Sequence record: MW384823.1 | Reading direction: 5' to 3' (one strand) | Length of the DNA: 64,000 nt | Part shown: in pieces, positions 3,001 through 5,972 of the stretch | Position numbering within the stretch: position 1 is the first letter of the stretch | Layout: the number at the start of each line of letters is the position of its first letter | Translations under genes and position numbers: made by a program | Notes under the pieces: generated by a model | Told to the model about the DNA's origin: nothing | Database searches by the model: none | What the model saw: the letters and a program-made list of their open reading frames with translations, nothing else

Positions 3001-3587
3001 GACCCAGTGCATCTTTTCGGGCTGGGTAGGGTTGATGTCCCTACCTGCGCGGTGTTCGTTAAGGCTGGTAACGTTCGCTAAGACCTATCGCATACCCGTA
3101 AGTCGATAGTAGCCGGTTACACAAAGAACTATCCATTGGGTAGGTAACTGACCGTTCACGATCTCATTAGGTGAGCAAATAATCTATGCAAGGACTTCTA
3201 GGATTTGTGCTCGACATGATGGGTAGCTTACGCCGCCTCATCAAGCAGTTACGAATCTGGAAGCTTGCCCATTACTGGTTTACAGGCGAAAAGGCTTCTC
3301 GTGAGAGAGCCACATGCAAACTGCGTATTTACATTAGTATGTTCACGGCTGTGAGCATAGGTCAAGCCCCGGAACGATAAGCCGGTCAGCTACGCCTGTA
3401 AAATACAATCTGAAAATCATAATGGGATTAAGTTCCCAGATTTGAAAAGGCGACTGTGTGTCGTCGGCGATAACCCCCCGTCGTGGACTCGGTTATCCCA
3501 AAGGTAATGTGAAAGGGGTTGGTGCTTGGAGGCGCTAAGACCGGCGGATACGCTGGCTCAGAAGAAGAAGTCCATCAACCCCATTCT
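3001..3587 (+). ncRNA. putative large structured non-coding RNA region (about 590 nt), or several tandem small RNAs
   Basis: No credible ORF; helices 3219-3229/3261-3272, 3279-3288/3393-3402 (10 bp perfect), 3293-3311 (GTGA tetraloop), 3338-3346/3351-3359, 3469-3475/3491-3497, 3515-3524/3573-3582. Confidence 0.55.
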
Positions 3588-3642
3588 CACCTAAGTAACT
3601 CTTTTACAGAGTGTTACTTATATATGCGAAAGCGAGGTGAAC

Positions 3643-3969
3643 ATGGGAACGTATCGTGAAGGTCCTGAAAGTACGGTGACTCACCGTAGTCATGATTACT
3701 CTGTGGATGCATTGCTGGATATAGCGGAACGTCATAGCCTCGTTCAAATTCCAGTGTCTAGAATAGAATGGATTTTAAACGAGACTACGCTCGATGATGA
3801 GCGGGTTAAGAATGCAGATACGGATTATCCAATAATCGTGCTGCACGAAGGAAGTTTGTATATTGTATTAGACGGTGCCCATCGCCTTGCGAAGGCGGTT
3901 GCCGAAGGGCGGGACACCATCGCAGCCAAGATACTTGTGCCTGCGAATCTACCGAAACCGGTACGATAA
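3643..3969 (+). CDS. small ParB/sulfiredoxin-fold protein
   Basis: YPIIV...VLDGAHRLAKA signature; GAGG RBS before ATG 3643. Confidence 0.75.
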   Translation: MGTYREGPESTVTHRSHDYSVDALLDIAERHSLVQIPVSRIEWILNETTLDDERVKNADTDYPIIVLHEGSLYIVLDGAHRLAKAVAEGRDTIAAKILVPANLPKPVR

Positions 3970-3971
3970 AA

Positions 3972-4000
3972 AGTCTAATTACAAGTTTACACTGTATTAT
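3972..4000 (+). promoter_or_regulatory. putative tRNA-operon promoter, copy 2
   Basis: 19-nt exact repeat of 812-830 followed by ACTGTATTAT, ending one base before a structured RNA at 4001. Confidence 0.55.
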
Positions 4001-4084
4001 GTCGGAAACCCGATTTGATGTTGCACAGGGCGCTACGCTGCGGCGTTTGCCGGTGTGCAGGGTTAGGTCGGGATTCTGGCACCT
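4001..4084 (+). ncRNA. long-stem RNA Z
   Basis: 4001-4013/4068-4080 pair (12 of 13 positions), inner helices TTGCAC/GTGCAG and ACGC-TGCG-GCGT, 3' tail ACC(T). Confidence 0.5.
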
Positions 4085-4088
4085 ATTT

Positions 4089-4173
4089 GGCGGGTTACTC
4101 AAGCGGCAACGAGAGCAGACTGTAAATCTGTTGACTTCGGTCTTCGGTGGTTCGAGTCCACCACACGCCACCA
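4089..4173 (+). tRNA. trnY: tRNA-Tyr(GTA)
   Basis: GCAGA-CT GTA AA-TCTGT arm, variable arm GAC-TTCG-GTC, A73 plus CCA; G.A mismatch in acceptor. Confidence 0.93.
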
Positions 4174-4179
4174 AACAGT

Positions 4180-4254
4180 TGGGGTATAGCCAAGCGGTAA
4201 GGCCCAGGGCTTTGATCCCTGTATGCCTAGGTTCGATTCCTAGTGCCCCTGCCA
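4180..4254 (+). tRNA. trnQ: tRNA-Gln(TTG)
   Basis: CAGGG-CT TTG AT-CCCTG arm, unpaired 1:72, G73 plus CCA. Confidence 0.93.
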
Positions 4255-4259
4255 CACAA

Positions 4260-4481
4260 TGGTACCTGTCACAGCAGCCCTTGAGGCTTACGCGAAGATG
4301 ACTGGCAGCCTCCTTTTACCGGGTAACACATTCCTGCCAGCGTGCTATTGCCGCGAAGGTTTGTCCCCGGTGTCGTGCGTTATTCGGGTCTACCCACGGT
4401 CTGCGGACGGTGCGCTGATGTCTCGATATACGCCATAGGGCAGCCTTGAGAACTCCGTGGGATTCGGAGGGGTACCACCCA
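4260..4481 (+). ncRNA. RNA A: about 220-nt RNA with a tRNA-like acceptor stem and T-arm
   Basis: GGTACCT(4261-4267)/GGGTACC(4470-4476) 7 bp, adjacent CTCCG-TGGGATT-CGGAG 5-bp/7-nt arm, tail A-CCCA. Confidence 0.55.
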
Positions 4482-4552
4482 TTCTTGTGTTTCCTTATCC
4501 TGAAGACATTCGTAAGACAAATCCATTCGTGGTCGAGGAAACACAGAACCCA
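4482..4552 (+). ncRNA. RNA B: 13-bp stem RNA ending C-CCA
   Basis: TTC(T)TGTGTTTCCT/AGGAAACACAGAA then CCCA; abuts RNA A, 4 nt before tRNA-Asp. Confidence 0.6.
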
Positions 4553-4556
4553 TTCT

Positions 4557-4631
4557 AGGACTGTAGTTCAGTGGGAGAACGCCGCCCTGTCACGGCGGAG
4601 GTCGCGGGTTCGAAACCCGTCAGTCCTGCCA
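4557..4631 (+). tRNA. trnD: tRNA-Asp(GTC)
   Basis: CCGCC-CT GTC AC-GGCGG arm, G73 plus CCA. Confidence 0.95.
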
Positions 4632-4639
4632 TTTTCAAA

Positions 4640-4715
4640 TGCGTCTTAGCTCAGTTGGTAGAGCGCACCCCTGATAAGGGTGAGGTCACTGGTTCAAGTC
4701 CAGTAGATGCAACCA
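4640..4715 (+). tRNA. trnI: tRNA-Ile(GAT)
   Basis: CACCC-CT GAT AA-GGGTG arm, A73 plus CCA. Confidence 0.95.
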
Positions 4716-4721
4716 AACACT

Positions 4722-4799
4722 GGTGTATGTAGTTCAGTTGGTTAGAATTCCGGCTTGTGACGTCGGAGGTCGAGAGTTCAAGTCTCTCCATACACCCCA
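4722..4799 (+). tRNA. trnH: tRNA-His(GTG) with encoded G-1
   Basis: G-1:C73 pair, CCGGC-TT GTG AC-GTCGG arm, CCA. Confidence 0.95.
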
Positions 4800-4805
4800 A
4801 ACAAT

Positions 4806-4881
4806 GCTCCCATCGTCTAGAGGCCAAGGACCCCAGGTTTTCAGTCTGGTAACCCCGGTTCAAATCCGGGTGGGAGTACCA
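4806..4881 (+). tRNA. trnE: tRNA-Glu(TTC)
   Basis: CCAGG-TT TTC AG-TCTGG arm, TTCAAAT T-loop, CCA. Confidence 0.92.
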
Positions 4882-4903
4882 TGTTATCCTCACGTAAATC
4901 ATC

Positions 4904-5006
4904 GCCGGTGTAAGGAAGTGGCCAAACCTAAGTAGGTCGTGAGGTAAAAGCTCACCACTGAACACCCTAAGGGTTCCTGAGGTTCGAGTCCTCAGTACCG
5001 GCACCA
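4904..5006 (+). tRNA. atypical 103-nt Leu-like tRNA with enlarged anticodon arm; anticodon undetermined
   Basis: GCCGGTG/TACCGGC acceptor, A73-CCA, D-arm, long variable arm, TTCGAGT T-loop; anticodon loop 12 nt longer than normal, with inner GTGAG/CTCAC hairpin. Confidence 0.65.
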
Positions 5007-5007
5007 T

Positions 5008-5183
5008 GTTCTCTTGCTGTGGGAAATAGAAGCGAACGTAGAAACGCCGATTAGCTTAAAGCTTAGAGCATCTTACCCTAGCGGTAAGGCAGTAGGGGCG
5101 CAACCCGAATTCCCTATCGGCAACGGCCTGCTTGTCAGGATTAGAAACATCTACGTGGATGGGTACTTCTACAGCGAGAACCA
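5008..5183 (+). ncRNA. RNA C: long-stem RNA enclosing a tRNA-like domain, ends CCA
   Basis: Outer stem 5008-5022/5169-5181, inner helix 5036-5042/5150-5156, tRNA-like cloverleaf 5046-5121; followed by AACAGT, the same spacer as after tRNA-Tyr. Confidence 0.6.
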
Positions 5184-5189
5184 AACAGT

Positions 5190-5262
5190 GGGAGCATTGT
5201 CCATTGTGACACCGGCAAAGGTTTCGTACCTTGCGGGTTGGGCGGAAGCCCGATGTTCCCCC
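5190..5262 (+). ncRNA. RNA D: 10-bp stem three-way-junction RNA
   Basis: GGGAGCATTG/CGATGTTCCC; inner hairpins with TTCG(T) and GGAA loops. Confidence 0.5.
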
Positions 5263-5383
5263 GAACGCTGGCCTTCTGGCCAATACAGTGAAAGCTTACC
5301 CTTGCCGTTGATCACCTCTTCTGCTGCTGCCAACACACTGTATAACCGGAATCAGTCCTGCCTTAAATGGCAAGCGTTCACCC
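5263..5383 (+). ncRNA. RNA E: cloverleaf-like RNA
   Basis: GAACGCT/AGCGTTC 7 bp plus ACCC; GGCC/GGCC arm; ATACAGTG/CACTGTAT arm with large loop; TGCC-TTAAAT-GGCA arm. Confidence 0.5.
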
Positions 5384-5388
5384 TTTAC

Positions 5389-5466
5389 GTTTCCTCAAGG
5401 CGGCTTGGGGTGTTATCTCTCGGCTCTGTTGGGTAACATCGTGGTTCAACTCCATGGGAAACACCA
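5389..5466 (+). ncRNA. RNA F: remodelled tRNA-like RNA with A-CCA end
   Basis: GTTTCCT/GGGAAAC acceptor, GTGG-TTCAACT-CCAT T-arm, 9-bp central arm with 14-nt loop, no canonical anticodon loop. Confidence 0.6.
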
Positions 5467-5472
5467 AACAAA

Positions 5473-5542
5473 GACCTCTCGCGTTGGTGTGCTAAAAGTG
5501 CTTTATTGCGCTGCTAGGATGGTTCGAATCCATCAGAGGTAA
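5473..5542 (+). pseudogene. degenerate tRNA (no CCA, 6-nt anticodon loop)
   Basis: ACCTCT/AGAGGT stem, GATGG-TTCGAAT-CCATC T-arm; D-arm eroded. Confidence 0.5.
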
Positions 5543-5619
5543 GTGCACGGCTGTTAAGCTGGTTAACACCCGACTCATAATCGGATATTCGCGGGTTCGA
5601 TTCCCGCTCGTGTGCGCCC
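5543..5619 (+). tRNA. atypical tRNA-Met/Ile2(CAT)
   Basis: CCGA-CT CAT AA-TCGG arm, GCGGG-TTCGATT-CCCGC T-arm; 6-bp D-stem TGTTAA/TTAACA, wobble-rich acceptor, ends GCCC. Confidence 0.7.
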
Positions 5620-5625
5620 TATTTA

Positions 5626-5701
5626 GACTCTGTAGCTCAGTTGGTAGAGCGGATGACTGTTAATCATCAGGTCACAGGTTCAAGCCCTGTCAGAGTCGCC
5701 A
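5626..5701 (+). tRNA. trnN: tRNA-Asn(GTT)
   Basis: GATGA-CT GTT AA-TCATC arm, G73 plus CCA. Confidence 0.96.
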
Positions 5702-5703
5702 CA

Positions 5704-5774
5704 TTTTGCATTGCCCGAGTCCCGAATGACATTCCGGAAAAATATCATCCATGGTCAAGGGCAGTGCAGAACCA
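5704..5774 (+). ncRNA. RNA G: 13-bp stem RNA ending CCA
   Basis: TTTTGCATTGCCC/GGGCAGTGCAGAA then CCA. Confidence 0.55.
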
Positions 5775-5778
5775 AAAT

Positions 5779-5838
5779 CCCAGCCTTCGCAGAAAAAGCT
5801 TACCTGCATTAGCGGTCCCCTGCGGGGGTTGGGTACCA
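5779..5838 (+). ncRNA. RNA H: 14-bp stem RNA ending TA-CCA
   Basis: CCCAGCCTTCGCAG/CTGCGGGGGTTGGG then TACCA, then a T-rich tract ending the cluster. Confidence 0.5.
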
Positions 5839-5972
5839 CCTTTGTCCGTTTTGTTTTTTTCTCTTAATTGTCTGGCGATGATGGCGGGAACAAAACGGAT
5901 AAAGCCCTAGCGGGGGAAAAGCCGCTAACAACAACAGAAGCAGTAAAAACAGAAGTAAAAGCAGGAGTAGTT

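Follow-up and report, generated by a model that had tools for sequence, protein, structure and literature searches.

The transfer RNA (tRNA) operon near the start of the genome of Erwinia phage pEa_SNUABM_43 (MW384823.1, Machinavirus, 241.9 kb) raises the question of what occupies the spaces between its tRNA genes. The GenBank record annotates eight tRNAs within 4089-5701 and leaves the gaps between them unannotated; a preliminary description of this DNA had proposed that positions 3515-5838 hold an array of CCA-tailed, long-stem RNAs interleaved with the tRNAs, acting either as mimics that soak up tRNA-targeting defense effectors or as small RNAs matured by the tRNA machinery. We addressed this question in a window comprising the first 64 kb of the genome, in which window coordinates equal record coordinates, and compared it with the corresponding region of 14 relatives belonging to four genera (Machinavirus, Erskinevirus, Wellingtonvirus, and Seoulvirus), to which several uncultivated ~240-kb contigs were added. 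From 4001 to 5908, every gap of the operon folds as a unit of its own whose closing helix, 7 to 16 bp long, is nearly always followed by (A)CC. Given the comparisons described below, we think it reasonably probable that the non-tRNA stretches of this region (~4001-5908) represent at least 11 distinct, selectively maintained noncoding RNAs (ncRNAs) that would be carried as passengers in a polycistronic tRNA precursor.

The main operon (4001-5908) contains 12 such units and eight tRNAs, which tile head-to-tail on one strand with spacers of 0 to 8 nt (Table 1). Units A, E, D, F, S', and X are top-half or cloverleaf-shaped, B, G, H, and Z are plain long hairpins, and C is a larger RNA with multiple hairpins. 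The closing helix consists of a 7-bp acceptor stem plus a T-like arm in A, E, D, F, S', and X (the acceptor of D has 8 bp), of one continuous helix of 12 to 16 bp in B, C, G, H, and I, and of an interrupted helix in Z (7 bp, a bulge, and a further stem). The terminal helix of the units is equivalent to the acceptor plus T stems of a tRNA (~12 bp), as in a minihelix; by direct reading of the sequences, a G3:U70 pair is absent from every closing helix. Calling these long-stem RNAs, as the preliminary description did, suits B, G, H, and Z, while A, E, D, and F are top-half or tRNA-shaped. Its list also stopped short: S', X, and I belong to the array, which runs to 5908.

All ten units listed at that time do fold with paired ends, with folding z-scores of -2.1 to -6.5 relative to dinucleotide shuffles. 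In a strict scan, which accepted an uninterrupted closing helix of at least 12 bp with a span of 45-240 nt followed by N0-2CCA, there were three matches (C, G, and H) in the 1615 nt of non-tRNA gap; 300 dinucleotide shuffles gave a mean of 0.07, none of the 300 reached three, and the remaining window yielded 0.10 matches per kb-strand. A shuffle test of long stems followed by NCCA had been put forward earlier; the excess is seen at 12 bp and above, and helices of 8-9 bp followed by CCA occurred in the gaps at the count expected from dinucleotide shuffles. Because of this chance-level count, the weaker units must be judged on more than pEa_SNUABM_43 alone.

Covariation in related jumbo phages, which had been put forward as a check, was found in most of the families. 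In the G/B family, the 16-pair closing helix of 14 distinct sequences is 91.7% paired versus at most 54.5% for slid pairings, six pairs are changed on both sides, and the ~40-nt loop hardly varies among the aligned copies from Machinavirus, Erskinevirus, and Seoulvirus. A covariance model of this family (R1), run on the relatives' loci, identified a pair of copies in every close relative and a single copy in the ChrisDB-like, Erskinevirus, and Seoulvirus phages, among them SPN3US; one copy is invariably 3' of tRNA-Asn. R1 was used in place of a degenerate DNA pattern for the loop, which was too loose when scanned over viral contigs (119+ matches, mostly chance). H is found 3' of G everywhere, in nine distinct versions whose perfect 14-18 bp helices are unrelated in sequence between clades; the tail is (N)CCA in eight of the nine and CCCC in Stratton. 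Because conservation in H is of structure only, MAFFT was unable to align it across clades, and a helix-anchored script was used instead. In family A, where acceptor pairs were counted by script, the acceptor strands GGTACCT/GGGTACC of pEa_SNUABM_43 correspond to GACACYT/GGGTGTC in other genera, with two pairs changed on both sides. Every copy of A forms six or seven of the seven acceptor pairs. The T-like arm does not vary and the tail reads ACC[C/T]N, whereas the body can be as short as 116 nt or as long as 216 nt; one position of an inner hairpin is occupied by three different pair types.

Among close relatives there are four compensatory pairs in F, two in D, and one each in Z and X (in X, an acceptor A-T replaced by G-C in pEa_SNUABM_10). 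F has homologues in ChrisDB and Stratton, and D has one in SPAsTU with a compensatory acceptor change. In ChrisDB, pEa4, and Caitlin, Z keeps its architecture and an ACC[T/C] tail with changed closing helix and inner stems. The E family is present in the Machina clade, the ChrisDB clade, pEa_SNUABM_11, and the relative labeled L137, with ACCC conserved, and its T-like stem (TGCC/GGCA here) is compensatorily changed to TGGT/ACCA in pEa_SNUABM_11. C keeps its closing helix in relatives and has one inner hairpin swapped for a different hairpin, and the helix of I is kept with compensatory changes in all clades, followed by CCC[T/C]AG in Machinavirus and CCA in SPAsTU.

The preliminary description had called the units CCA-tailed, which proved correct for the first part of the tail only: the conserved tail is (A)CC, not CCA. 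Of the 12 operon units, 11 (all but X) have (A)CC directly 3' of the closing helix, and it is kept across clades in which the helices have changed. The encoded tails are ACCA in S', C, F, G, and H, ACC[C/T] in Z, A, B, and E, and CC in D, with none in X; the ACCA of C is seen only in pEa_SNUABM_43 and is ACAA in six relatives, and in Parshik, Huxley, and Machina unit B ends in CCTA. From the tails of D, E, Z, A, B, and C, and from the GCCC end of tRNA-Met, we conclude that the terminal A is often not encoded. Phage tRNAs that lack an encoded terminal A and rely on 3' trimming and the CCA-adding enzyme are a familiar situation, known from T4. Units also share the trailer CCA-AACA with tRNA-Tyr, tRNA-Ile, and tRNA-His, and their leader often has U at -1. 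This shared spacer had been pointed out before and was confirmed: five plus-strand copies of CCAAACA fall within 4171-5470, each at the 3' end of a unit or tRNA, and the window as a whole has 20 copies versus 10.8 expected. A second recurrent motif, CCATTCT, is indeed present at 3581, 4479, and 4550, but its window-wide count is not significant.

Table 1. RNA units of the tRNA operon of pEa_SNUABM_43, followed by the tRNA genes and the features upstream of the array
Feature	Coordinates	Strand	Description	Basis
Z	4001-4084	+	84-nt long hairpin directly before tRNA-Tyr; closing helix 4001-4007/4074-4080; tail ACCT	Folding z -6.5
A	4261-4481	+	221-nt RNA with tRNA top half; 7-bp acceptor 4261-4267/4470-4476 stacked on 5-bp T-like arm with 7-nt loop (4453-4469); tail ACCCA	Covariation
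B	4482-4552	+	71-nt hairpin RNA, paralogue of G; tail (A)CCCA	Covariance model R1, 83 bits
S'	4904-5007	+	104-nt class-II-like tRNA-shaped RNA; 7-bp acceptor, canonical T arm, long extra arm, aberrant D/anticodon region; tail ACCA	Predicted fold
C	5008-5183	+	176-nt multi-hairpin RNA; 13-bp closing helix 5012-5024/5167-5179; tail ACCA	Helix + tail scan
D	5190-5262	+	73-nt cloverleaf-like RNA; 8-bp acceptor, long middle arm, 4-bp arm with GGAA cap replacing the T loop; tail CC	Folding z -3.6
E	5263-5383	+	121-nt RNA; 7-bp acceptor 5263-5269/5373-5379 stacked on 4-bp T-like arm; tail ACCC	Relatives
F	5389-5466	+	78-nt tRNA-shaped RNA; canonical T arm, 9-10 bp "anticodon" stem with 14-nt loop; tail ACCA, then AACA	Fold, compensatory pairs
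X	5473-5541	+	69-nt tRNA-shaped RNA; canonical T arm; without CC tail or standard anticodon loop	Fold
G	5704-5774	+	71-nt hairpin RNA; closing helix 12-13 bp, ~40-nt loop largely invariant; tail ACCA	Covariation, covariance model R1
H	5779-5838	+	60-nt hairpin RNA; 14-bp helix 5779-5792/5820-5833; tail TACCA	Helix comparison
I	5840-5908	+	Hairpin unit; 16-bp closing helix 5840-5855/5890-5905; tail CCC	Fold, relatives
tRNA-Tyr(GTA), tRNA-Gln(TTG)	4089-4254	+		ARAGORN; Rfam 47.6 and 57.9 bits
tRNA-Asp, tRNA-Ile, tRNA-His, tRNA-Glu	4557-4881	+		ARAGORN, Rfam
tRNA-Met(CAT), tRNA-Asn(GTT)	5543-5701	+		ARAGORN; Rfam 35.4 and 74 bits
ParB-like coding sequence	3643-3969	+	Small, 108 aa, at operon head	GenBank annotation; phrog_17560, E 1.7e-53
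Hairpin, then TATATATG	3593-3626	+	Candidate operon start, between U0 and the ParB-like coding sequence	Folding z -3.1
U0	3515-3582	+	68-nt conserved RNA motif; 10-bp closing helix 3515-3524/3573-3582, inner hairpin	Covariation

The units are not overlooked tRNAs. ARAGORN and Rfam, run on the window, returned the same tRNAs as the record and nothing further (10 annotated tRNAs in total with ARAGORN), and ARAGORN called none of the units. No unit matched the Rfam tRNA family RF00005 (gathering score 29 bits) at E values up to 10, even in a 661-nt search, and no Rfam family matched any unit; the only hit for S' was to tRNA-Sec, at 15.9 bits versus a gathering score of 47. The YrlA family (RF02553) reached only 26 and 23.9 bits versus a gathering score of 69, both on true tRNAs. 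Candidate attP-like tRNA 3' fragments, group I introns, and known ribozymes were rejected because both helix strands covary and because Rfam gave no match.

Neither are the units coding. A 140-aa open reading frame (ORF) with a TTG start codon runs across C-F (5014-5436) and matches phrog_24101 with an E value of 7.8e-36, and this match could mean that the small ORFs annotated in relatives, such as Machina gp16 over C and D, are real genes. We give that possibility almost no credence: the match covers residues 1-74 only and stops at the point in D at which a 1-nt indel puts relatives in different frames; there was no Pfam match for the ORF, and the substitutions are compensatory in RNA helices. 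The family phrog_24101 is itself based on "hypothetical protein" ORFs over C and D, annotated in Machina (locus L006, 2924-3220), Parshik (L003, 3092-3388), and Huxley (L007, 2927-3223). Judging from a frame that is unconserved among relatives, these annotated ORFs are probably not genes, and the array thereby flags spurious ORF annotations in public records. It is also unlikely, if less so, that the units are decayed tRNA genes, i.e., functionless remnants of duplicated tRNAs left behind as folding spacers. F, X, S', and D are cloverleaf-shaped with recognizable T arms, ChrisDB contains an obviously degenerate tRNA-Glu-like stretch, and the cluster is mosaic, with an HNH-like endonuclease gene inserted in pEa_SNUABM_6. 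Decay fits S' and X best, since both are patchy and variable and slot X differs between relatives, and it fails for the cross-genus families: A, E, D, G/B, H, I, and Z have been retained in different genera, with substitutions that are compensatory and loops that do not change, and B, G, H, I, and Z have no trace of a cloverleaf. Moreover, the units are about as conserved as true tRNAs, with 90-100% identity to Machina versus 84-99% for tRNAs with a full-length match.

Alternatively, the structures could act in cis and never be released, serving as processing punctuation, exonuclease barriers, or termination/attenuation signals for phage RNA polymerases. H and I do close the tRNA block on its 3' side, ahead of the next coding sequence, with a T-run after H, and the conserved motif U0, described below, adjoins the candidate operon start. 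We nevertheless consider such a role quite improbable, as it leaves the conserved (A)CC tails, the T-like arms, and the invariant loops unexplained. H was rejected as an intrinsic terminator: the T-run (5851-5860) begins 13 nt after H and lies inside hairpin I, where it pairs. A terminator and promoter scan identified none, and terminator-like sites were at the level expected from shuffles. A trans-acting alternative is that, after maturation by the host, the units form a phage battery of acceptor-end mimics, released top halves that would compete for defense effectors or for processing and charging enzymes that recognize tRNAs by the acceptor stem and CCA end, thereby protecting the genuine tRNAs. 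Acceptor-like geometry with (A)CC(A) is the single feature common to the units, the units outnumber the tRNAs of the main operon, the slot before tRNA-Met holds fast-changing tRNA-like bodies, and toxins that target the acceptor end and inspect the acceptor stem do exist (bioRxiv 10.1101/2024.07.05.602228; PMC10435456). However, we saw no link between any unit and a defense system, CCA is often not encoded, incomplete, or not conserved, no closing helix offers the G3:U70 pair, and literature searches gave no precedent of RNA decoys for tRNA-targeting systems. The invariant G/B loops, which a generic acceptor decoy would not need, point to a sequence-specific partner. Taken together, we regard a decoy battery as improbable; if true, it would amount to RNA-based counter-defense or host takeover and would explain the T4 RNAs RNAC and RNAD, discussed below, as well.

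We favor the explanation given at the outset, that the units are ncRNA passengers of the tRNA precursor. Bacterial RNase P cleaves acceptor/T hairpins correctly, makes use of an RCCA contact, and also matures the phage M3 and C4 RNAs and 4.5S RNA (PMC11143913). From these known substrates, together with the tiling, the tRNA-like trailer and leader, and the acceptor/T-like helices, we infer that the units would be excised by the tRNA-processing enzymes. Each closing helix imitates the acceptor/T-arm coaxial stack of a tRNA, and host RNase P would cut on its 5' side; the 3' trailers would be trimmed, and the CCA-adding enzyme would complete the ends where the final A is not encoded. Discrete, nuclease-resistant small RNAs would then be released from the presumed common transcript and accumulate separately, as do the T4 species 1 and 2 RNAs. 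The proposal in the preliminary description that these are small RNAs matured by the tRNA machinery is consistent with the tiling on one strand, the shared trailer and leader, and the compensatory helices. If the released RNAs function in trans, they most likely do so through individual sequence-specific partners, as suggested by the differing unit bodies and the invariant G/B loops.

Several points weigh against this explanation. That discrete RNAs exist is predicted from sequence, and in many units the encoded tail is incomplete or variable (ACAA for C in relatives, CC for D, none for X). Several of the helices are longer than, or built unlike, the 12-bp stack of a tRNA, which makes the choice of RNase P site uncertain. 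E has nearly no informative variation among close relatives, too little to test. Finally, these phages use their own RNA polymerases, for which our scan identified neither promoter nor terminator.

The preliminary description had stated that no such array was known. This was too strong, as the T4 tRNA cluster contains species 1 (RNAC) and species 2 (RNAD), which are the closest precedent and whose roles are unknown (PMC3014915, PMC9697503). T4 rnaD and rnaC come immediately after the final tRNA of their cluster and share its strand, and the pEa_SNUABM_43 units are likewise in the cluster and on the tRNA strand; rnaC has a canonical T arm beside paired ends, and rnaD ends in ACC. Both clusters can also host a homing endonuclease gene, segB in T4 and an HNH_3/NUMOD4-like ORF in pEa_SNUABM_6. 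The two differ in number, with two RNAs in T4 versus about 12 in pEa_SNUABM_43, interleaved with tRNAs, and, unlike the T4 RNAs, most of the pEa_SNUABM_43 units are plain hairpins or have noncanonical T-like arms. The G/B model R1 found no match at the T4 locus, and the T4 folds differ from those of all units, the other families having been compared by fold only. We regard the array as a greatly enlarged version of what T4 has in species 1/2, made of real, conserved, unannotated RNAs that mimic tRNA ends; literature searches found no description of an array of such size.

Other known RNAs resemble single units rather than the array. For minihelix substrates of RNase P, a helix of ~12 bp with a single-stranded 3' RCCA is sufficient (PMC11143913), a form to which G (12 bp and ACCA), C, F, S', and H conform; many other units encode only (A)CC, unlike RCCA minihelix substrates, and RNase P cleavage of the array is a prediction. 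Pre-4.5S RNA, phi80 M3 RNA, the P1/P7 C4 antisense RNA, and acceptor/T minihelices are all single RNAs and form no array. YrlA Y RNAs mimic the acceptor, D, and T arms of tRNA, and in mycobacteria YrlA is an RNase P substrate to which CCA is added (PMC4201824). YrlA is an ncRNA that some phages encode, with an architecture unlike that of the units. The structured ncRNAs GOLLD and ROOL, which some phages carry, have no known function and tend to adjoin tRNA genes. They differ from the array in being single RNAs of several hundred nucleotides, and the units have no Rfam match.

The array thus adds about a dozen RNA families outside Rfam that outnumber the operon tRNAs and are kept, under compensatory change, across Machinavirus, Erskinevirus, Wellingtonvirus, and Seoulvirus jumbo phages. 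RNAs of the kind found in the T4 tRNA cluster have been known for decades and are still unexplained, and the array provides a comparative handle on them, not available from T4, in the form of covariation, invariant loops, and the presence or absence of units. The units also provide defined candidates for what tRNA-end mimicry does for a phage.

Some observations concern the neighborhood and individual positions of the operon. pEa_SNUABM_43 encodes split RNA polymerase genes of the phiKZ type; the GenBank annotation of 9-59 kb names these phiKZ-like subunits and no tRNA-processing enzyme. tRNA-Met(CAT) (5543-5618) is the weakest tRNA of the operon, with 35.4 bits, an unusually long D stem, and a GCCC tail, and its Machina counterpart is not called by ARAGORN. 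The slot just before tRNA-Met (5473-5541 here; 3381-3474 in L006, 3715-3793 in L004, the Salmonella phage pSal-SNUABM-04, and 4416-4509 in L005, pEa_SNUABM_6) holds differing tRNA-like bodies among relatives, annotated as tRNA-Ile(aat), tRNA-Pro(cgg), or undetermined. All of these bodies lack both a standard anticodon loop and an encoded CCA, and three relatives have the acceptor GGCTCCG/CGGAGC in common. S' is 100% identical in pSal-SNUABM-04 (L004, 3148-3252) and absent from the other relatives, indicating recent exchange within the cluster. It stands in the place (4882-5007) of a tRNA-Ser(gct) that follows tRNA-Glu in every relative and is absent from pEa_SNUABM_43. In pEa_SNUABM_6 (L005, 3893-4599), unit F is interrupted by an inserted ORF whose HNH_3 and NUMOD4 matches fall just below the Pfam cut-offs. 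At the 3' end of the block, I and a small hairpin at ~5908-5927 fill the stretch between H and the next coding sequence, and the annotated coding sequences of Parshik gp21 and Machina gp19 start inside the stretch equivalent to 5840-5927.

Upstream of the array, positions 3515-3583 had been listed as its first CCA-tailed unit. This stretch instead contains a separate RNA motif, U0, without a free CCA: its C's are paired within the covarying 10-bp closing helix, and the base that follows varies among relatives (A, G, or C). The closing helix and inner hairpin have 97.9% of cells paired versus at most 50.6% when slid, and seven pairs are changed on both sides. The internal loop consists of two invariant 16-nt strands, one of which is a GAAGAAGAAG run, with one repeat more in Huxley. 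A third helix between the variable blocks was dropped, as the majority version does not pair there, unlike the pEa4, Caitlin, and L136 versions. U0 is 94-96% identical to its ChrisDB and Stratton counterparts, in which the flanking coding sequences are 75-78% identical, and it is confined to contigs of ~240-kb SPN3US-like jumbo phages; no Rfam family matched it. U0 thus represents a new, very conserved RNA motif of these phages.

A hairpin followed by TATATATG, which occurs once in the 64-kb window and thus is no general motif there, may be the start signal of the operon. Its position is kept in relatives: the ParB-like gene comes next or, for some uncultivated phages of ~240 kb, a tRNA directly. 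Because the hairpin and TATATATG come after U0 and before the ParB-like gene or tRNA, U0 probably lies upstream of the operon start where TATATATG is present, and outside the tRNA precursor. In the Erskinevirus phages Stratton and Asesino, which do not have the TATATATG motif, U0 lies 6 nt upstream of tRNA-Gly. The intergenic stretch upstream of U0 (3381-3514) folds no better than shuffles (z -1.1) and is 100% identical to Machina and ~80% identical to ChrisDB.

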